Sequence record: NC_061421.1
Reading direction: 5' to 3' (one strand)
DNA: 64,000 nt
The first letter of the stretch is position 1. Each line of letters opens with the position of its first letter. Both the position numbers and the translations under genes were made by a program. Shown piece after piece: positions 7,654 to 59,396 of this stretch. The notes under the pieces were generated by a model. The model was not told the origin of the DNA, made no database searches, and saw only the letters and a program-made list of their open reading frames with translations.

Positions 7654-7672
7654 TACACGAAAACAAATGGAA

Positions 7673-7698
7673 CCGAGTGAGTCCGCGGACTCACTCGG
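7673..7698. terminator. perfect 26-bp palindrome, probable terminator of the chmC-like gene
   Basis: CCGAGTGAGTCCGCGGACTCACTCGG is its own reverse complement; 15 nt downstream of the stop. Confidence 0.65.
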
Positions 7699-7713
7699 GT
7701 AACCCTATTTTGT

Positions 7714-8517
7714 TTACCAAGGAACGTCGTTATCGAAGTCGCCTTGCGCTGCAGGCGCTGAGGCCGGAGCAGAAGCCCCGCTGTTGTTATTCCAGCTATT
7801 TTGTTGAGACTGCTGACCACCGCCGTTCCAGTTCCCGCCACCTTGACGTTTCGCAAAGTTTTGTTGGTTCTGTTGTTTGTTACGATCTTTCGCTTCCTGG
7901 AGTTCCTGATCGGACATGTAACCCGCTTTTAGCATAGAGTTGACATGATCCCACCAGATATCGGCGCGTGCGCGAGCGGAAAGCTCAGATACGTAACCGT
8001 TAGTAAGAACTTCACCGGACGCTAAACGCAACTGTGTCATCTTCGGCGGAACAAAATAGAACTTGATATTGTCCCGACCTTTCATACTGAGACCGATAAA
8101 GACACCTTCTTGGTCTTTACCGACAACCACCATCACTTCGGTCTCTGGGCGATCCAGTTTTTTACCGAACATGAAAGTCGACATACTTTCCAGTTTCATA
8201 ATGTTATCGGGTAGGCGTCCCAACGCCGCGTCCTCGATAGCCATGGTGATCATTCTGAATTGACTGATGGTAGGGAAGAAATCGATTTTCCCTTCTCGTC
8301 CCTGTTTACGCAAGTTAACGCCCATTTTGATATCACGGACTTTAACGTGGTTACCGTCAACTTTGTGATAACGGAAATCAACAAAAAGAAACGGTTCTTT
8401 GCCATCGCTGCTTGCAGTAGCGGGTGCACTCAGCCGGCAATCCCAGGCATCCATTGCACGTAACGGACGACCAAGGTCAAAGTTGTTATTGTAAGCCATA
8501 GCTAGCCTTATTTTCAC
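7714..8517 (-). CDS. chmC: probable ChmC-like nucleic-acid-binding protein with G/Q/N-rich tail and SSB-like acidic tip (start may be ATG 8499)
   Basis: 267 aa; beta-rich N-domain plus low-complexity tail ending GDFDNDVPW; directly upstream of the gp68-like gene, as for PhiPA3 ChmC. Confidence 0.6.
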   Translation of the reverse strand: MKIRLAMAYNNNFDLGRPLRAMDAWDCRLSAPATASSDGKEPFLFVDFRYHKVDGNHVKVRDIKMGVNLRKQGREGKIDFFPTISQFRMITMAIEDAALGRLPDNIMKLESMSTFMFGKKLDRPETEVMVVVGKDQEGVFIGLSMKGRDNIKFYFVPPKMTQLRLASGEVLTNGYVSELSARARADIWWDHVNSMLKAGYMSDQELQEAKDRNKQQNQQNFAKRQGGGNWNGGGQQSQQNSWNNNSGASAPASAPAAQGDFDNDVPW

Positions 8518-8569
8518 GGTTAAGAAAAGGGTTATCGTATTAACTGTCTGACGCGTAAAAACCGAGTCT

Positions 8570-9415
8570 TCAGAGCAGTCGTTTCAAATGCTCAGCGGTG
8601 TAACGGTCGCTCATCCAACCCAGATTTAGTTTGATTTTGTCTGTGGTGGTCATTGTGGTCCATTTAAACCGTTCTGCCAGTTCAAGGACTGCTTCACGAA
8701 CAGCTTTGGGGTAACGCATAAAAAGAATGTTTCGGTCTCCAAAGACCTGAATGGTGAATTCGTTGAAAGGTATCCGCGGATAGAGTTTCCCGTCTGTCAG
8801 TTTAGTGTTCCATTGACTCTTCGATTTAATTGCACCAGAGTAGGATTCGATTAATCGAAGTTGGGTGAACGCGGTGCGCGAGAGTAGATCAACGGGGTAA
8901 TGCGTGAGAATTAAAGCTTTCACAGGTTCGCCTTTTAATTGGGAACCTTTATCGAAGTCTAAATACTGACCAATCGGTCTGCGAAGTACCTCATCAATTA
9001 CATTGTCCATGAGAAAATGATATGTCTTTTGTAACGGCGTTTTAGGTGTAAATAGAATAGCACCAGGGAAACGCCGTAAGAGATCTCCGTACTCTCGATG
9101 GTACAATGTAACTTTGTCCAATTTCCCTTGTCCATATTGCAGGATTTGTTGAAGTTCTTCCTCGAGGGTATCAGCAAATCCCACAACAGTTTCTCGCATA
9201 GTTCGGTTACTTTTATCTTGCCCTAACGCCGAGACTAATGCCTTTCGGTCTTCTCCGTCCAAAGCGTCGTAAATATTACGATACAATGTACGGGTGTTTA
9301 TCCAGAGCCCGCCATAGCGTTTATTAGGCTCCAGCGTTTCCATGGCCAAGCTGGTACCGATGCTGAGCGGGAGTTCCCCTACCGCTCTGCGGGCAAGGAT
9401 ATCATAGACGTTCAT
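8570..9415 (-). CDS. conserved core-block hypothetical protein (possible 5'-3' exonuclease/PIN-like fold)
   Basis: ORF track 8570..9430; GAGG RBS favours ATG 9415; LPLSIGTSLA and LWINTRTLYRN look like conserved phiKZ-like motifs; function weakly supported. Confidence 0.65.
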   Translation of the reverse strand: MNVYDILARRAVGELPLSIGTSLAMETLEPNKRYGGLWINTRTLYRNIYDALDGEDRKALVSALGQDKSNRTMRETVVGFADTLEEELQQILQYGQGKLDKVTLYHREYGDLLRRFPGAILFTPKTPLQKTYHFLMDNVIDEVLRRPIGQYLDFDKGSQLKGEPVKALILTHYPVDLLSRTAFTQLRLIESYSGAIKSKSQWNTKLTDGKLYPRIPFNEFTIQVFGDRNILFMRYPKAVREAVLELAERFKWTTMTTTDKIKLNLGWMSDRYTAEHLKRLL

Positions 9416-15866: not shown

Positions 15867-15939
15867 CTTTAATTCTCCTAGGAGTTTAAATCAATTATAA
15901 TCGCGATTTCCGAAGATACTCATTATCTTCTTCATTATA

Positions 15940-15947
15940 GTGATATA
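15940..15947 (-). promoter_or_regulatory. putative early promoter TATATCAC for chmA
   Basis: motif 74 nt upstream of the chmA start with upstream T-tract. Confidence 0.7.
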
Positions 15948-16152
15948 GACGTTAAAAAAGTTTGAAATGGGTTATTTTATCATTGAAGATATAATAAGCC
16001 CTTCTTAGCAGAGAGTTCTGTTGAATAATCAACAATAACTTTCTACATATAATAGATTACTACGCCCAGTTGGGCTGTTCCTTCGTTATGAAGGATTTCT
16101 TTCATAGTATAGACTACTAACCTAAAAAAAGATTTTATACCGGAGAACGTCA

Positions 16153-17247
16153 ATGATTTCAGCTTTTGAACTTCTCAACCGTCAGTCCGTTAAAACGTTC
16201 TTCCCTGGTCAACTTACCGTCCTTCGAGGGAATGCCGAATTAAACTTAAGAAACATTAAACGACATTACCTTAACAGTATTCGTGCAGTGGACAGTGACC
16301 ATATCCTGATACAGATACTACAACATCTTCCTACCCGATTAGATCTTGATGACGAACAGTATTATCGTTACTGTCATTCCGCCAGTAAATTGACTCATCG
16401 TGCACTAAATTTAAACACCGAAACTGTCTTGTCGGGGCGAGCCAGTAAAGCCTGGTTTTACGGTCAGGGCATTACCGAGTTTTACATTGTAGAAGAATCC
16501 GATTTACCGTATCGCTTCGACGCTAAAAATTACTGGCGTGCTCTGACCCCTGTACGGGTACTTTCCCATCCGTTAACCGGACTTTCGTTCAATGCGCGTG
16601 ACGGAAGTCCGTTCAGTAAAGAGAAAGGGTTTGCATTTATCTCGATCGACATCGGTCTTTTGGCTGTTCAGTACCGGCATTGGGAGCTTTACAACAACGG
16701 TACGGAAACTCAACAACACCCTGTCTCCATTAACCAATTCATTTACCAGTATCCTTTGGTCAACATGATTGAAGGAGATATGGATTTTTGTTTCTTTAAC
16801 CGGTTAAGATTAAAGAAAGGTTTCATTGAAGAAAATGATGACAAAGCACGACATGGTCTCGCTATCATGGATTTACGACCGATGACGGACCGGGTATGGG
16901 ATGACTGGTTACAACGTGCTCAAACTGCGCCTAGAAGATTTATAGATCTCCCGGCACAAATCCCAGAACTGTTTGCAGATACCCTACTGGAAAGGATTAC
17001 CTTCCCGGACATTTTGTTTAACCGTCAAAACTTGGGTATTTACACGCTGGCAAATTTACCATACCTAAGTACCCTGTCCCGCCTTTCCGGCGAAACAGGG
17101 TCAAAGGATAACGGGTCAGTTCAAACCCAACTAGAACGATGGTATAACCGTTTTGTAAACGGTAACTATTTCCTTCCTATTCATGGCATCAATCCTCAAG
17201 GTACTCTACAGGTTCTTTTGGACGAAGTGCTGACTCCACTTCGTTAA
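16153..17247 (+). CDS. conserved hypothetical protein, probably late/virion-associated
   Basis: 364 aa, GGAG RBS; plus-strand gene between polymerase and chmA as in phiKZ-like genomes; TATG in upstream region. Confidence 0.7.
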   Translation: MISAFELLNRQSVKTFFPGQLTVLRGNAELNLRNIKRHYLNSIRAVDSDHILIQILQHLPTRLDLDDEQYYRYCHSASKLTHRALNLNTETVLSGRASKAWFYGQGITEFYIVEESDLPYRFDAKNYWRALTPVRVLSHPLTGLSFNARDGSPFSKEKGFAFISIDIGLLAVQYRHWELYNNGTETQQHPVSINQFIYQYPLVNMIEGDMDFCFFNRLRLKKGFIEENDDKARHGLAIMDLRPMTDRVWDDWLQRAQTAPRRFIDLPAQIPELFADTLLERITFPDILFNRQNLGIYTLANLPYLSTLSRLSGETGSKDNGSVQTQLERWYNRFVNGNYFLPIHGINPQGTLQVLLDEVLTPLR

Positions 17248-50770: not shown

Positions 50771-51019
50771 TTAGACTATTTTCAATATCTGGCGATGGTA
50801 ATAACGCTCAGTCAGTGCATTCAGTGAAAATTCTGCACTTTCAGGACGCGCAATAAAATCATCGCAAACCTTCTGGGTTTCTTCAAAGACCAGACGCTTA
50901 CGAATACGTTCTGCAACACGCCGTACCATTTTGGCTTTACCTTTGTGTTCCCGAAACCCGATAGCCAAAGTGACTAACAAATCGATCATCTCATGATCGA
51001 GAGCGATATTTCTGCTCAT
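50771..51019 (-). CDS. hypothetical protein
   Basis: ATG 51019 in ATGA overlap with the upstream stop; 82 aa. Confidence 0.7.
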   Translation of the reverse strand: MSRNIALDHEMIDLLVTLAIGFREHKGKAKMVRRVAERIRKRLVFEETQKVCDDFIARPESAEFSLNALTERYYHRQILKIV

Positions 51020-51366
51020 CCGGCAATATCTACATTTGAGTAGAGAACGGAACAAGTGTCGTCGCCGTCGAAGACCACGCCAGATTCATTCATCCATTTA
51101 GTTTCGCTTTTAGATTTTTTATCCCGGAAAGACGCGGTGGTATAAACTTTATACCCCGGAGTTTGAGCTTCTCCTTCCATAGCGCTCAAGGGACTGGGTT
51201 TACTGCGGAGTACAGCTACTGAAACGGTCTTGGTGTCCACAGTAGGGAAAGTCGCCACAGCTTCCTTAACTGCATTTTGTACTCGGGAGATACAGGCCGC
51301 ATTCGGCGCTGCGATTGCTTGGTTGATTGTCAGGGATGCAATAGCCAGCAGAATAATTTTTTTCAT
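51016..51366 (-). CDS. exported protein with signal peptide and Cys pair
   Basis: MKKIILLAIASLTINQAIA|A; AAGGAG RBS. Confidence 0.8.
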   Translation of the reverse strand: MKKIILLAIASLTINQAIAAPNAACISRVQNAVKEAVATFPTVDTKTVSVAVLRSKPSPLSAMEGEAQTPGYKVYTTASFRDKKSKSETKWMNESGVVFDGDDTCSVLYSNVDIAG

Positions 51367-52843: not shown

Positions 52844-53314
52844 TCAATCAAGGTAAAAACATTTCCCGCCTTTGTTCTCCGCTACTAATTTTTTCAGTCC
52901 GTTAGTAGAGAAGACCACGTAGGCATCCGGGTGACCCTCAACGTACAGTTTGAAATTTTTCGCTTTGGTTACCTTAACGGTGTCGAAGAACGCACGCCAG
53001 TTACTGGATCCAACTCTAGAGAGGGGGGTAATCATCTGGTACGTATCCCCAGCTATGTCAATAACCAACGTATAACGGTCATCGGTAGTAGAAAGAGATT
53101 GTCCTTTCGCGTCGGTCAGGAAAAGCGCCTGATCTGGCCAGTTGTCACCGGTATCGCGACACGAGAACGACAGTGAATAACCGTCTGTACTTTCGGTATA
53201 AAACTCAAGGGTTCCTTGCTGATATGACTCTGTCCAGCGATTCACAACAGCTTGTGAGGCGAAGGACATAAACGCAGAAAGAGCCACCAGTGTTGCAGCG
53301 ATAAATTTTTTCAT
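52844..53314 (-). CDS. exported (periplasmic) hypothetical protein
   Basis: 156 aa; MKKFIAATLVALSAFMSFASQA signal peptide; two Cys. Confidence 0.8.
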   Translation of the reverse strand: MKKFIAATLVALSAFMSFASQAVVNRWTESYQQGTLEFYTESTDGYSLSFSCRDTGDNWPDQALFLTDAKGQSLSTTDDRYTLVIDIAGDTYQMITPLSRVGSSNWRAFFDTVKVTKAKNFKLYVEGHPDAYVVFSTNGLKKLVAENKGGKCFYLD

Positions 53315-54946: not shown

Positions 54947-55339
54947 GATTTTTACCTATTTATTTAGTAAAAGGGTTGAATGAATTTGTCCTCTAAAGAA
55001 GTGTACAAATCGCATAGAGCGATGCCCAAGATCGACCGGTGAACTCACAGCCTTTTATCTTGCAGCGTCGTGTCGTCTCAGAGAGTGTTTACTACGGCCT
55101 ACGATTCATAATCTCAGACATAACTCGATTTGTTAGTCTAGAGTGAATCGCCCGTCAAAGCCTCGATCTGTTACGGCAACGATAACAACGAATTTTACCA
55201 ATGTACAACTTCTTCTTACGAGATATGAGAGAGTGAGAAAATACACTTTGCTTTAGAATTAAGTAACACTACTTATTTCTAAGCGTTTCATCATAAGCTC
55301 TTCCTTTCAAGTTAAGTGTGCCGAGGGTGGAGTTACTGC

Positions 55340-55687
55340 TTACGCAGTTGCAACGCCAGCTTCGTCAACAGAAGCTTGAGTCGTTTCAACCGGTGCAGTT
55401 ACATCGCCGCTTTCTTTTGGGAAAAGCAGCGCCTTCAGGTTTTTGTAAGTGTCGGTGACGTAGGTCACGATCAGCAGACCCGCTACCATATATGCCGCGA
55501 CTTCGACCGCCAGGCTCAGGAAGAAGATTGCGAAGAAGATCAGGATCGCCATCAGAATCGTGTCGAATACGAAGCTACCTAACGCTTTACCCTTCTCAGT
55601 GATAGAGTAGGTAGTGCTTTCGGTATCGCCTTCAACGACAGTTTCTTTAGCGACGAATTGTGCGAAAAACGATTTGAATTTGTTCAT
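55340..55687 (-). CDS. two-TM membrane protein
   Basis: 115 aa, high-expression codon style, AAGG RBS. Confidence 0.8.
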   Translation of the reverse strand: MNKFKSFFAQFVAKETVVEGDTESTTYSITEKGKALGSFVFDTILMAILIFFAIFFLSLAVEVAAYMVAGLLIVTYVTDTYKNLKALLFPKESGDVTAPVETTQASVDEAGVATA

Positions 55688-55770
55688 GATATTTACCTTT
55701 TAGATGGATTAGATAATAACTGCATTTGAGAGAGTACTACTAACACCGTTGAGAGACGGTGGCCTAGAGC

Positions 55771-55887
55771 TTAAATAAACTGTACTGCCGCGATTACGAT
55801 CAGCGCTAAAATACAAGCTGGGAGGACAGCCAAATCCAGAGCAATAGCCATTGCCCCAGCCCCGAATAAAGAGAGTGCGTTTTTCAT
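55771..55887 (-). CDS. 38-aa hydrophobic peptide (not in ORF track)
   Basis: TAATG coupling; MKNALSLFGAGAMAIALDLAVLPACILALIVIAAVQFI. Confidence 0.55.
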   Translation of the reverse strand: MKNALSLFGAGAMAIALDLAVLPACILALIVIAAVQFI

Positions 55888-56057
55888 TACGCTGGCTCCC
55901 CGTGGTCTGTGTTCATCCATTTTCCGGTATTAGCCTGGGAATCGATGATAGCGCCGACCATACCGGCCACAAAAGCAATAAGAATCGCTGGAACTACTGT
56001 CAGTTCAAACATAGCTGAAACCAACAGAACAATAATTAGCATGATGAAATAAGTCAT
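55887..56057 (-). CDS. 56-aa two-TM membrane protein
   Basis: GAGG RBS before ATG 56057 (MTYFIML); ORF track extends to 56153. Confidence 0.7.
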   Translation of the reverse strand: MTYFIMLIIVLLVSAMFELTVVPAILIAFVAGMVGAIIDSQANTGKWMNTDHGEPA

Positions 56058-56071
56058 TTTAATTACCTCTT

Positions 56072-56230
56072 TTAAAGTTCGTATGAGATTGCCATGATCA
56101 GGAAGAAAGGGGAAAGCGCATACCAGGTAATGACACTTACAACCCCGTAACAAATAGCCATCGGTATACTCACGCCGAAGATGAAAAGAGTGATGAAAAA
56201 TCCCATTAGGAAGATAATTAATTCTTTCAT
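56072..56230 (-). CDS. 52-aa hydrophobic protein (not in ORF track)
   Basis: GAGGA RBS; MKELIIFLMGFFITLFIFGVSIPMAICYGVVSVITWYALSPFFLIMAISYEL. Confidence 0.6.
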   Translation of the reverse strand: MKELIIFLMGFFITLFIFGVSIPMAICYGVVSVITWYALSPFFLIMAISYEL

Positions 56231-56292
56231 ACTTTCCTCTTAGACCTCTTAGGTCAGTAAATGGATGTTTAGTTATCAGAAAAGCGTTATAT

Positions 56293-56344
56293 CTTTCCTA
56301 TTTCACTGTAGCAATATATACATCAAAAAAACTGCATTTCGATT
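56293..56344. repeat. 52-bp divergent-promoter repeat, copy 2
   Basis: 51/52 identical to 34634..34685. Confidence 0.9.
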
Positions 56345-56388
56345 CTTAAGAGTTTTTATGACCCCTTCTACAACACAGGCTCTCTACG

Positions 56389-56928
56389 ATGAAAAAACTC
56401 ACTATTTGGGGACTCCCTGTCCCTTTACTCGGTTTTCTTCACTGGTTCGTTTTTCTATTGATTTATTTCTTTGCGTTAATTATTTGTGTTTTTGTCACCC
56501 CGTTCCTTCCTATTTTCGCAACTAAGGAAGGTAGACTCCCTACGTGGTTAGCCTGGTTTGATACCCCAGATAACACCCTTGATGGGGATTCAGGCTGGAA
56601 AGAGAAGCATTCGCTTTGGGTAAAATTTTTACCGGATTGGGCCGAGACTTATGTGGCCCGAGTATTCTGGTTATACCGTAACCCTCTTTATGGTTTCTCG
56701 ATCAGCGTTCTAGGGGCCCCTAAGGATAAACACCTCCAGCCGGTTCTGGACGGTAAAGGCTTTGACGTAAAAGGGACGTATAAGTCGCATTACTGGATGG
56801 TTTATTTCATGCGGGATGATCATGTCAAGAAACGCCGTTTTAAAGTGTATATCGGATGGAAACTCAAAGCGGAAGGATTTGATAAATATCAGTTCGCTTT
56901 TTTGATTAACCCTTTCCAAACGCCGTAA
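56389..56928 (+). CDS. membrane-associated phage hypothetical protein
   Basis: 179 aa; N-terminal TM; WFDTPDNTLDGD and WLYRNPLYGF motifs I recall from many phages. Confidence 0.8.
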   Translation: MKKLTIWGLPVPLLGFLHWFVFLLIYFFALIICVFVTPFLPIFATKEGRLPTWLAWFDTPDNTLDGDSGWKEKHSLWVKFLPDWAETYVARVFWLYRNPLYGFSISVLGAPKDKHLQPVLDGKGFDVKGTYKSHYWMVYFMRDDHVKKRRFKVYIGWKLKAEGFDKYQFAFLINPFQTP

Positions 56929-56931
56929 TTG

Positions 56932-56969
56932 AAACAAAAAAAAAAGAGAGGGCAAACGCCCTCTCTTTT
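56932..56969. terminator. bidirectional terminator, exact copy of 35972..36009
   Basis: 38-nt identity. Confidence 0.9.
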
Positions 56970-57409
56970 TATATTCTTTTTAAAGAATCGATTTCCAGCG
57001 CCACTTCAAATTCGTAAAGCATTCGCCCGAAGAAGGTCGCAATCGTGAGCAAGCCGAGGAGGTATTCGTGATGTACCATCAACAGAATCGTAAAAGCTAG
57101 TGCAACGATGATTCGCTGACAAACATTCATTCCGCCTACAAAGGTAATGTGTTTTTCTGCCTTTTCAACGATCACTTGGCGCATCGCAGGCGTCAGGACG
57201 GCGCGTGTTATATCGGGCAATGAAACGTATTGATAAAGCACCCAACCTAAACGACCGAGAATGAGTGCTACTGCCCATAGACGAACCAAATCAAAGGCTG
57301 TTTCGTTTTGCTTAAAACACAATACAGCGAGTACCACGCAAGAGAGCAGCGAGCAAATTTTAGAGGTGAGGGTAGAGAGGTAGAACATCTTTGTATTCCT
57401 TTTCTTCAT
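56969..57409 (-). CDS. four-TM membrane protein
   Basis: 146 aa, four hydrophobic segments. Confidence 0.75.
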   Translation of the reverse strand: MKKRNTKMFYLSTLTSKICSLLSCVVLAVLCFKQNETAFDLVRLWAVALILGRLGWVLYQYVSLPDITRAVLTPAMRQVIVEKAEKHITFVGGMNVCQRIIVALAFTILLMVHHEYLLGLLTIATFFGRMLYEFEVALEIDSLKRI

Positions 57410-57459
57410 GAATTGTCATAGTTGTCAGGGAACGGTTGTTCCCTGACAATGGACGGAGA

Positions 57460-57960
57460 TTAGTTACAGGTCAGAACGAGCTTCCCTTGGATATGGGTCA
57501 CGCCAAATGGCATCTGCTGAGCGTCCAGGTTGATCTTCGGAGCCAGCGCCAGCGTTTTGGTGTTACCTGCGATATTCTGCGCTTGTGCAGCATCAGTCCA
57601 CGCGTATTCCACATTGTTAACGAACACGGAAGTTTGATCGCGGTTGCTCACCGTCATCAGGTTATCGGCAAAGTCGAAGCGACCAGTGTTCTGGGTCAGT
57701 TTCGCTTCAGTGAGGCGCCAGTTTTTCTGGGCCGTGTTGCTGGTCAGCACGAAGTTGATCGCCTTACTGTTATTAGTACCGGTTTCGCCTTTCAACAGGA
57801 TACCGCCGACTTGAACACCGTTCGCGTAATCGATACCGCAGGAGATTTGAGTTTGGTTGTATTCTGCGTCCCAGACCAGTTCATTGGCAGCAAAAGCCGA
57901 AGAGGTCAGTGCCAGAGCGATTACGGAAACAGCGATTTTGATAGATTTCATTTGATACAA
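57460..57960 (-). CDS. exported pilin/fimbrial-subunit-like protein (start may be 57951)
   Basis: signal peptide ending SSAFA|A; beta-rich; Cys near N-terminus and in terminal GKLVLTCN; high-expression codon bias. Confidence 0.7.
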   Translation of the reverse strand: MYQMKSIKIAVSVIALALTSSAFAANELVWDAEYNQTQISCGIDYANGVQVGGILLKGETGTNNSKAINFVLTSNTAQKNWRLTEAKLTQNTGRFDFADNLMTVSNRDQTSVFVNNVEYAWTDAAQAQNIAGNTKTLALAPKINLDAQQMPFGVTHIQGKLVLTCN

Positions 57961-58011
57961 TTCCTATTTGAATAAAGAAAGGTTTTAGTTAAAAACGACG
58001 AGAATTTACTA

Positions 58012-58416
58012 CTATGGATCAACTTGCATGGCGCGTTGAGAATCCATTTGTTGATTCTTTTCCATGCGATCCATTTCCATCTCCAAACGTTTAATTTGGA
58101 GTTCTTTCTGACGGCGACTCAAATCAGCGAGTCTTTCACATGACTCTGCCATTTTATCGTCGCCCCCGAGAGGGATACTGATGCTAACGTAACCGCCTTT
58201 ATCGTCATTAGCATAACGATACTCGCTGCCGTTATTTCCGTACGCACCAACGTTGATTGTCGCCTGAGGACGGCTAACCTCACAGCTAATATCACCGTTT
58301 TGAATACGGCCGCGGTTTTCTGCGATGTTGTTGGTGATATAGGGAGCATCAGCAAAGGCGGTGCCAGCTGCTACCAATGTTACAATGAACAAGAGAATTT
58401 TATTCGAGATCGACAT
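58012..58416 (-). CDS. exported protein with amphipathic beta-hairpin and C-terminal coiled coil
   Basis: GAGG RBS before ATG 58416; signal peptide ending TAFA|D; ATINVGAYG...GGYVSISIPLG, then a heptad-rich helix. Confidence 0.7.
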   Translation of the reverse strand: MSISNKILLFIVTLVAAGTAFADAPYITNNIAENRGRIQNGDISCEVSRPQATINVGAYGNNGSEYRYANDDKGGYVSISIPLGGDDKMAESCERLADLSRRQKELQIKRLEMEMDRMEKNQQMDSQRAMQVDP

Positions 58417-58771
58417 TGAAACATGCCTCTGGCTGAATTTCCGATTGAGGGACAACCTGCATGGCGCAGATCATTACGTATTTTTTACCGTTACTTCTCT
58501 CCCGAATAAATTTATTATTGACTTTGATAGGGAAGGTTGCCCTTTCTCCACCGAAGACATATTTTTTATACGGAACGCCGTTTTTATCGGCGATTTTTTT
58601 ATCTTCGACGCGAAATACAAAATCAGAAGATTCTTTCGAATCAACAAACATCTCAACAACTGTATAGTTGTCGTATCCGATCGGTGTTACCCGCTGCACC
58701 GGGCCGAAATAAAATGCCATGGCATTAACAGAGAACAGCGACAAAAGAGTAAGTAGTAATAAGCGTTTCAT
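58400..58771 (-). CDS. exported Ig-like, pilus-chaperone-like protein
   Basis: 123 aa; signal peptide ending NAMA|F; beta-strand pattern; YVMICA...EACF Cys pair. Confidence 0.65.
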   Translation of the reverse strand: MKRLLLLTLLSLFSVNAMAFYFGPVQRVTPIGYDNYTVVEMFVDSKESSDFVFRVEDKKIADKNGVPYKKYVFGGERATFPIKVNNKFIRERSNGKKYVMICAMQVVPQSEIQPEACFNVDLE

Positions 58772-58838
58772 TCAATTTCTCGGTGAAAGAAAAATAATAG
58801 AGGGAGTGAAGGGTATTAATACCCTTCACTGTATAATC

Positions 58839-59255: not shown

Positions 59256-59396
59256 GTGAAACTCCTTTTTAAATGGTTTAGTTTGGTTTCGTGAAAAGGT
59301 TTTATTATTCCTTGTTCACCTTAGAAATATATATGTTAAAAAAATTGGAAATCAAAAAAAAAGAAAGAGAGAGGAAACCCTCTCTCTTTCTTACCT

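Follow-up and report, generated by a model that had tools for sequence, protein, structure and literature searches.

We describe a cassette of three genes on the minus strand of a 64,000-nucleotide (nt) stretch of sequence record NC_061421.1, referred to below at its full length as the window. The window was 100% identical to the Klebsiella jumbo phage vB_KpM_FBKp24 (MW394391.1, 307 kb, Maaswegvirus), and record positions in MW394391.1 were converted to window positions by subtracting 62000. The cassette is a real, undescribed, mobile envelope module. Its genes gp143, gp142, and gp141, called A, B, and C here in the order of transcription, very probably specify an exported set of three proteins that belong together in the envelope. 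The best explanation of the whole, which we put forward tentatively, is an operon-like mobile envelope cassette in which C would polymerise or attach into a fibre or coat with A and B helping. Literature searches yielded no description of such a module.

Gene Layout, Export Signals, and Cysteines

The three adjoining open reading frames (ORFs) are tightly packed, and all of them are annotated as "hypothetical protein" in GenBank. Gene A (58400-58771, minus strand) encodes 123 aa, as supported by the ORF list, GenBank annotation, an AlphaFold model, and the family alignment. Gene B (58012-58416, minus strand), defined by the ORF list and annotation, encodes 134 aa when counted from the ATG common to its relatives, and its first 17 nt are shared with the end of A. 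Gene C (57460-57951, minus strand) encodes 163 aa with the C-terminus GKLVLTCN and was delineated using the ORF list, annotation, AlphaFold, and codon bias. No broken genes were found in the region.

Signal peptides were assigned by rule rather than by a dedicated predictor, the rule being a basic n-region, a hydrophobic core, and a small-x-small site. The N-termini of A, B, and C contain one or two Lys/Arg followed by a core with a mean Kyte–Doolittle value of 2.8-3.3 over 10 residues, and the small-x-small site ends at residues 19, 22, and 21, respectively. The predicted signal peptides thus cover 58715-58771 in A (residues 1-19), 58351-58416 in B (residues 1-22, without a lipobox cysteine), and 57889-57951 in C (residues 1-21), all on the minus strand. 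In the structural models, A shows a helix at residues 3-13 with a low predicted local distance difference test (pLDDT) score, and pLDDT is <50 for residues 1-15 of C. The rule-based analysis detected no second membrane segment and no lipobox in any of the three proteins.

The same pattern extended to the relatives of the cassette. All 39 proteins of the 13 lineages described below carried a rule-based signal peptide with a signal peptidase I site and without a lipobox. The mature proteins contain exactly two cysteines each (102 and 117 in A, 45 and 93 in B, 38 and 162 in C), and two cysteines were found at aligned positions in 39/39 proteins and 13/13 lineages. The trio therefore has the hallmarks of Sec-exported, DsbA-type oxidised envelope proteins, namely a signal peptide and an even number of conserved cysteines. 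A preliminary description of this locus, made from the sequence alone, had noticed three consecutive minus-strand genes with Sec signal peptides and cysteine pairs; the ORF list, the rule-based analysis, and the 13-lineage alignment bear this out.

Two NCBIfam matches, to Stx2B and BhsA, were rejected. They covered only residues 1-20 and 1-36 and scored 13-14 bits against cut-offs of 90-205 and, because the signal-peptide part alone was aligned, they represent signal-peptide look-alikes rather than homologues. As these were the only NCBIfam matches, and both were to signal peptides of other exported proteins, they back the rule-based call. Nothing apart from such look-alikes was returned by Pfam, PHROGs, NCBIfam, and PADLOC searches with the trio and its neighbours, or by phmmer and profile searches of PDB sequences. 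A crude signal-peptide rule passes five of the 85 window genes, and by our own combinatorial estimate three of these would be adjacent by chance with p ~0.008, a consideration made irrelevant by the conservation of the trio in 13 lineages. The other two genes passing the rule are gp126 (51016-51366) and gp130 (52844-53314), the latter with two cysteines in its mature part, and the phage may thus export further proteins beyond the trio.

Distribution, Conservation, and Mobility of the Cassette

The order A-B-C, on one strand and with a spacing of -17 to +63 nt, was found in all 13 lineages examined: FBKp24, Siatvirus KpLz-2_45, Miamivirus, Eowynvirus, Henunavirus pEp_SNUABM_01, seven metagenomic large-phage lineages, and a contig of Providencia rettgeri. 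The carriers span five phage genera (Maaswegvirus, Siatvirus, Miamivirus, Eowynvirus, and Henunavirus). Wherever the surrounding DNA was readable, any one member was accompanied by all three. One 2.6-kb contig (L020) carried a distant C-like gene without A or B alongside, but was too short to judge. Co-conservation of the gene neighbourhood, which the preliminary description had proposed as a check on its reading, is thus established for A-B-C in 13 lineages. No fourth conserved gene was found beside the cassette, and the flanking genes gp144 and gp140 are common only to the nearest genus, Siatvirus.

Protein C has few relatives. In a protein-cluster search, relatives of A, B, and C formed 15, 67, and 12 clusters, respectively, the search for C covering 5.8 billion proteins. 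A profile search of 1.84 billion proteins returned 11 representatives for C, all of them either members of the same small family or spurious; P0104, a protein of 1579 residues, was rejected as a spurious match. In the GenBank phage collection, B and C occurred in the same 24 records. Mean pairwise identity was 31% for A, 47% for B, and 46% for C, and in one lineage C was down to 23% identity while B was at 38%. Between FBKp24 and the 97%-identical Centimanus, dN/dS ranged from 0.07 to 0.13, indicating purifying selection.

The cassette was located in accessory or nucleotide-metabolism regions and never in structural or lysis modules, a setting that fits a host-directed function. In Henunavirus pEp_SNUABM_01 (147 kb, Vequintavirinae), the trio lies among tRNA genes. 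A GIY-YIG/T5orf172 homing-endonuclease gene with a DUF723 zinc finger stands directly downstream of C in four lineages (L002 4598-5566, Centimanus; L013 4064-5083, Miami gp133; L022 7053-8396; L031 7202-8326). The endonuclease gene is present in Centimanus and absent at the matching spacer of FBKp24 (57389-57459) despite the 97% identity. Endonuclease-driven co-conversion may be a route by which the cassette is transferred between co-infecting large phages. No flanking repeats pointing to a transposon were found around the FBKp24 cassette. In the most divergent lineage, a gene for an outer-membrane beta-barrel of the Ail/Lom family lies directly past C (L031 6615-7133).

The sole bacterial copy of the trio, which is intact, was found in Providencia rettgeri GCA_040139945.1 on contig JBEEVP010000011.1 (169 kb). 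This contig carries a plasmid-type ParB and no phage structural genes, and the codon usage of its trio has shifted to that of the AT-rich host (GC content at third codon positions ~0.2). A genuine usher-chaperone fimbrial operon is located nearby (L017 60-4413), with the trio side at 7667-8903, 3.2 kb downstream; a toxin-antitoxin pair with a TacA-type antitoxin gene and insertion-sequence remnants lie in between. We treat the association of the trio with the usher operon as unproven. Two pattern scans of 185,579 species genomes for further bacterial copies gave only a 592-bp scaffold, probably a contaminant, and no PLSDB plasmid carried C, so that no bacterial origin of the cassette was found in these collections. 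The cassette is essentially a phage trait, though able to persist without a phage.

This persistence argues against a role in the virion. That the trio might consist of virion or virion-assembly proteins is suggested by its carriers, all of which are large myophages, several with complex tail fibres (PMC9700779). Cleavable signal peptides and conserved disulfides, in contrast, would put the trio outside the cytoplasm, where virions assemble. The proteins also had no match among PDB sequences, a set that should include the deposited capsid and tail models of phiKp24, and the Providencia contig harbours the trio without phage structural genes. The phiKp24 papers report no virion proteome or transcriptome. 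The preliminary description would have fallen had the proteins been virion components; nothing points to that, and we regard a virion role as the least probable of all the explanations considered here.

Fold and Expression of Protein C

Protein C (~142 residues when mature) was modelled by AlphaFold as a monomer with a pLDDT of 87.5. When this model was compared to the PDB using Foldseek, the top match was CfaB, a pilin of the class-5 chaperone-usher type (E 6.5e-4, prob 1.0), followed by CS17 and CooA. The next ranks were occupied by the PapG pilin domain, FimA/FimI, SafA, PapE, CsuA/B, and CupE. TasA, cannulae, an archaeal thread, and uromodulin, which form usher-independent strand-complemented fibres, were also listed. 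Ordinary Ig/fibronectin domains, far commoner in the PDB, do not head this list, and they do head that of A. Judged by Foldseek on the predicted structure, C has the pilin-type Ig-like fold of chaperone-usher subunits, in line with the pilin likeness proposed for it at the outset. We conclude that C is probably of truly pilin fold.

The mature protein begins with a conserved extension (57841-57888, minus strand; residues 22-37) that was delineated from alignments and DSSP and represents a candidate donor strand. Twelve close relatives all share E24, V26, W27, and A29, and the last of these is invariant in 19 sequences, two of which are ~23% identical. Residues 22-37 adopt no regular secondary structure and, in particular, no strand in the monomer model. 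This appearance is compatible with that of a donor-strand extension.

Gene C also stood out by its codon usage. Its frequency of optimal codons (Fop) was 0.72, which ranks third among 78 window genes and lies 2.4 standard deviations above the median (median 0.51, standard deviation 0.087). This value lies between those of chmA, the chimallin homologue (0.79), and of the tail sheath gene (0.66), the two genes to which its codon bias had been likened from the beginning, whereas A and B are average. In 12/12 phage lineages, C had the highest Fop of the trio. A stable hairpin follows C in most lineages.

Several observations weigh against reading C as a pilin-like subunit. Its TM-scores to pilins are modest (0.39-0.47) and, with its seven strands, the monomer model does not reveal an incomplete, groove-bearing fold. 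Neither C nor 18 of its relatives had a fimbrial match in Pfam, NCBIfam, or PDB sequences and, for the trio as a whole, Pfam, NCBIfam, PHROGs, and PDB profiles gave no sequence link to fimbrial, chaperone, usher, or curli families. Polymerisation of C is a more cautious proposal than its fold: it may occur, but we would not presume it.

Protein A

Protein A (~104 residues when mature) was predicted to form a seven-stranded Ig-like beta-sandwich (AlphaFold pLDDT 86.8). Its best Foldseek matches were MSP domains, followed by many unrelated beta-sandwich domains, including receptor-binding ones. In SCOP, MSP domains belong to the PapD-like superfamily, where they are grouped with the N-domain of pilus chaperones, which provides a lead rather than a test. 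Matches of A to the diphtheria-toxin R-domain, GH3, and arrestin were rejected as generic Ig-like. Homology between A and C was not detectable, only their signal peptides being alignable.

The preliminary description had likened A to the Ig domain of a fimbrial chaperone. The all-beta Ig-like sandwich stands; the chaperone is not supported, as A is a single domain rather than a two-domain PapD-like protein (PapD_N plus PapD_C). The fold of A is generic, no pilus chaperone appeared among its top 50 Foldseek matches, and no PapD Pfam match was detected in 14 relatives, all of which counts against assigning A to a pilus system.

The receptor-binding domains among the structural neighbours of A could also be taken to suggest a soluble complex, secreted and working extracellularly in an adhesin-like or binding capacity, released at lysis or through B. 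Small, exported proteins with predicted disulfide bonds would suit such a function. However, the matches of A in question are generic Ig-like ones with a TM-score of 0.4, no enzyme or toxin family was matched (the 13-bit Stx2B match comprising the signal peptide only), and there is no partner of catalytic size. We consider a soluble complex improbable.

Protein B and Its Likeness to TolC

Mature B has 112 residues and a single hairpin. In the family alignment, a conserved N-terminal segment is followed by Cys45, a strand (residues 51-58), a loop, a second strand (residues 76-84), Cys93, and a heptad-like helix. The predicted beta-hairpin (58165-58266, minus strand; residues 51-84) consists of two amphipathic strands recognised in the family-averaged beta-moment profile. 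The strands are 8-9 residues long, one face of the second being fully aliphatic, and tyrosines close both at the loop side. The loop between them is rich in Asn, Gly, Ser, and Tyr and variable in length, with an insertion in one lineage. The two cysteines flank the hairpin symmetrically, 8-10 residues outside on each side. The helix (58042-58158, minus strand; residues 87-125), predicted from the helical moment and the alignment, is amphipathic and heptad-like, and the coiled-coil-like C-terminal helix measures 30-40 residues in the family.

The motifs quoted in the preliminary description (ATINVGAYG...GGYVSISIPLG) are present in B, and their resemblance to the strand-to-helix junction of TolC was found to recur among the relatives. 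When scanned one by one, 11/32 relatives of B matched the Pfam family OEP (PF02321, the TolC family) below threshold. The best score was 21.7 bits against a cut-off of 22 (P0047), and ten further relatives scored 10-19 bits. The matches always paired residues ~44-118 of B, i.e., the hairpin and the following helix, with profile positions ~33-107. E. coli TolC itself matches the profile in two stretches, the better of which places residues 232-427 on positions 2-187; positions 33-107 therefore presumably correspond to the second strand pair of TolC and the start of its long helix. As an internal control, stray Pfam matches in the A and C families amounted to one or two members each.

Other tests did not support membership of B in this family. 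All OEP scores were below the gathering threshold, and the B of the window itself had no Pfam OEP match. The B profile matched no PDB sequence at E up to 10. With comparators taken from E. coli K-12 (NC_000913.3), hhalign gave a probability of 1.9% for B against TolC alone and 0.4% against an alignment of TolC, CusC, and MdtP, the non-significant alignment nonetheless pairing the same strands, with TolC repeat 2. An hmmsearch test between B and TolC gave -3 bits, and a PDB search using TolC itself added nothing. In addition, the strands of B are short for an outer-membrane protein, and it has no aromatic beta-signal at its terminus. The junction noticed originally is thus exactly where the repeated sub-threshold matches fall, whereas the Pfam threshold and the reciprocal tests failed. 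As far as sequence comparison goes, the TolC likeness of B is real at the level of the motif, and family membership is not established. That B forms an outer-membrane barrel is possible but doubtful.

The predicted periplasmic coiled coil and membrane-seeking hairpin of B would also be of use in lysis, with B, aided by A and C, weakening or bridging the outer membrane late in infection in the manner of spanins or disruptins. Genes for lytic transglycosylases are indeed present elsewhere in the window. However, without a lipobox or a retained N-terminal membrane helix, B is not spanin-like in its architecture, and no member of the trio combines an o-spanin lipobox or an i-spanin N-terminal anchor with a location beside endolysin/holin genes. 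In no lineage was the trio located next to such genes, and an intact copy persists on the plasmid-like bacterial contig. Like a virion role, a role in lysis is unlikely; we rank it marginally behind the soluble complex.

Comparison with Known Systems

The trio fits no known pilus system or OEP family, and its resemblance to them is one of fold and layout only. Among the closest systems are the class 5 (alpha, CFA/I-CS1) chaperone-usher fimbriae of enterotoxigenic E. coli, with the major pilins CfaB, CooA, and the CS17 subunit. As in these fimbriae, C is a secreted beta-protein of ~15 kDa, for which they provide the best fold match; it has an N-terminal extension and the highest predicted expression in the operon, where its gene comes after those of a periplasmic Ig-like protein (A) and a putative outer-membrane protein (B). 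Unlike them, the cassette comprises neither an usher of ~800 residues nor a two-domain chaperone, and no usher gene (Pfam Usher/PapC, ~800 residues) was found in or beside the cassette in 13 lineages. C differs further by matching no fimbrial Pfam, by TM-scores of only 0.39-0.47, by an N-to-C-terminal cysteine pair, and by the location of its gene on lytic phage genomes.

With the TolC/OEP family (PF02321), B shares the arrangement of helix, hairpin, and helix, its second strand and helix aligning to the strand-to-helix junction in 11 relatives. The family members, however, have ~450 residues with two tandem repeats, each contributing two strands and long helices, compared to 112 residues and one hairpin in mature B, and the B scores are below the cut-off with empty reciprocal searches.

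Usher-independent donor-strand fibres (Bacillus TasA, archaeal cannulae and threads, uromodulin/ZP) are structural neighbours of C, and TasA, cannulae, and uromodulin demonstrate that an usher is not required for strand-complemented Ig-like or jelly-roll subunits to polymerise. They differ from the trio in belonging to other organisms and secretion routes, in having weaker E-values to C (0.01-0.1), and in lacking partners similar to A or B. The curli set (the CsgG pore, CsgE, CsgF, and CsgC) consists of several small exported proteins, including an Ig-like, cysteine-bearing protein of ~100 residues and an oligomeric outer-membrane pore. It resembles the trio as a fibre system of several small exported proteins, but no Pfam or structural match to any Csg protein was obtained, and C does not belong to the amyloid repeat proteins, nor B to the lipoproteins.

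Other lytic phages are known to encode small Sec-exported proteins with a function in the infected cell's envelope (T4 Sp, Imm, and RI; T5 Llp; Cor). These are single proteins without a pilin fold, do not form a three-gene cassette, and have no PHROGs similarity to the trio. No PADLOC model was matched (E up to 1) by A, B, or C or by the flanking gp144 and gp140. On the whole, we rate the trio as best classed near strand-complemented Ig-fold fibre or envelope proteins.

Proposed Mechanism and Its Main Rival

As selection has preserved the three as a set, and their products are co-produced, exported, and oxidised, the trio is most likely one envelope device. The most economical reading of this device is a minimal fibre- or coat-building set. 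A, B, and C would be expressed from one operon-like, horizontally mobile cassette, exported by Sec, and provided with one disulfide each, and the three products would act jointly in the envelope of the infected cell. C, predicted to be the most abundant of them and to have the fold of a fimbrial major subunit, could use its N-terminal extension to polymerise or attach by strand complementation, giving rise to a fibre or coat. A, as a one-domain Ig-like periplasmic partner, could hold or cap C. B could oligomerise via its C-terminal coiled coil and insert its hairpins into the outer membrane, where it would provide C with an anchor or with a small TolC-like channel. The polymerisation of C, the outer-membrane insertion of B, this division of labour, and a benefit to the phage are what we infer beyond the gene structure, the export signals and cysteine pairs, the co-conservation and mobility of the cassette, the predicted folds of A and C, and the codon bias of C.

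The principal rival to this reading is a complex that does not polymerise but binds or blocks a component of the host envelope and thereby changes the surface of the infected cell, for example in phage exclusion. The target might be a receptor, capsule export, an efflux duct, or the chaperone-usher pili of the host, in which case C would mimic a pilin. Export signals and disulfides are equally expected for such a complex, and high expression of C would suit a stoichiometric binder. The placement of the cassette in accessory or nucleotide-metabolism regions rather than structural modules, its proximity in FBKp24 to several small membrane-protein genes, and the Ail/Lom gene past C in one lineage are in keeping with it as well. 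Moreover, phage periplasmic proteins mostly serve exclusion or lysis control, as T4 Sp, Imm, and RI and T5 Llp do, and this precedent favours the rival. What a non-polymerising complex leaves unexplained is the likeness of C to fibre subunits over ordinary Ig domains and its conserved, unstructured N-terminal extension; nor did PADLOC return a match. We therefore consider it somewhat unlikely, and continue to favour, tentatively, the fibre or coat.

A stronger version of the fibre or coat reading can be formulated, in which the trio would be a self-sufficient minimal fibre-assembly machine. In it, A would be a one-domain holder, B an oligomeric TolC-like exit or anchor, and C a donor-strand pilin, with which lytic phages would clothe the infected cell and which would be spread by homing endonucleases. 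We find this version rather unlikely, more so than the non-polymerising complex. The preliminary description had pictured a miniature chaperone / pore / pilin system. That picture is borne out in part at the level of folds; the trio belongs to no known pilus system. Since an usher, a two-domain chaperone, and passed TolC tests are all absent, it is a reasonable analogy and not a family assignment.

Cassette Edges and Neighbouring Genes

Both edges of the cassette in FBKp24 are marked by hairpins. At the 5' edge, between gp144 and A, a perfect 13+13 inverted repeat (I5; 58805-58830, minus strand) followed by a T-rich tail has a terminator-like appearance, with a folding energy of -16.5 kcal/mol (z -5.4). 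At the 3' edge, directly past the stop codon of C, a 12+12 inverted repeat (I6; 57422-57449, minus strand) folds with -22 kcal/mol (z -6.1). An Rfam scan of the region gave nothing above threshold. Three terminator-like hairpins on the minus strand (56941-56970, 58785-58830, and 59361-59392) have a similar T-rich tail and make up a repeat family, D1, splitting the region into short transcription units.

The part of the window at 55300-57400 is crowded with genes for small membrane proteins (gp135-140), including a DUF7338 gene on the opposite strand. Among them, gp135 (55340-55687) encodes a 115-aa membrane protein with the second-highest codon bias of the window (Fop 0.77) and a weak Pfam match to a holin family (E 0.005). 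Elsewhere in the window, ~1.3 kb at 15867-17188, separating gp083 (the chimallin homologue) from gp084 (the DNA polymerase gene), carry no GenBank feature.

Significance

Soberly read, the trio represents three uncharacterised protein families that form a mobile, conserved envelope module in Klebsiella and Erwinia phages considered as therapeutic candidates. The words periplasm, signal peptide, pili, fimbria, and secreted are all missing from a 2026 review of jumbo-phage biology, which is silent on exported proteins altogether, and given this silence the exported-protein side of jumbo-phage infection appears unexplored. The trio probably acts in the envelope, perhaps as a fibre or coat, and an envelope role of this kind has not been described for lytic phages. 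If B is a single TolC-type unit, it would show how a barrel can be constructed from minimal protomers. If C polymerises, the cassette, with three proteins of 104-142 residues and no usher, would be much smaller than any other gene set for a strand-complemented fibre in the Gram-negative envelope, and its product would be the first pilus- or coat-like structure encoded and deployed by strictly lytic phages.

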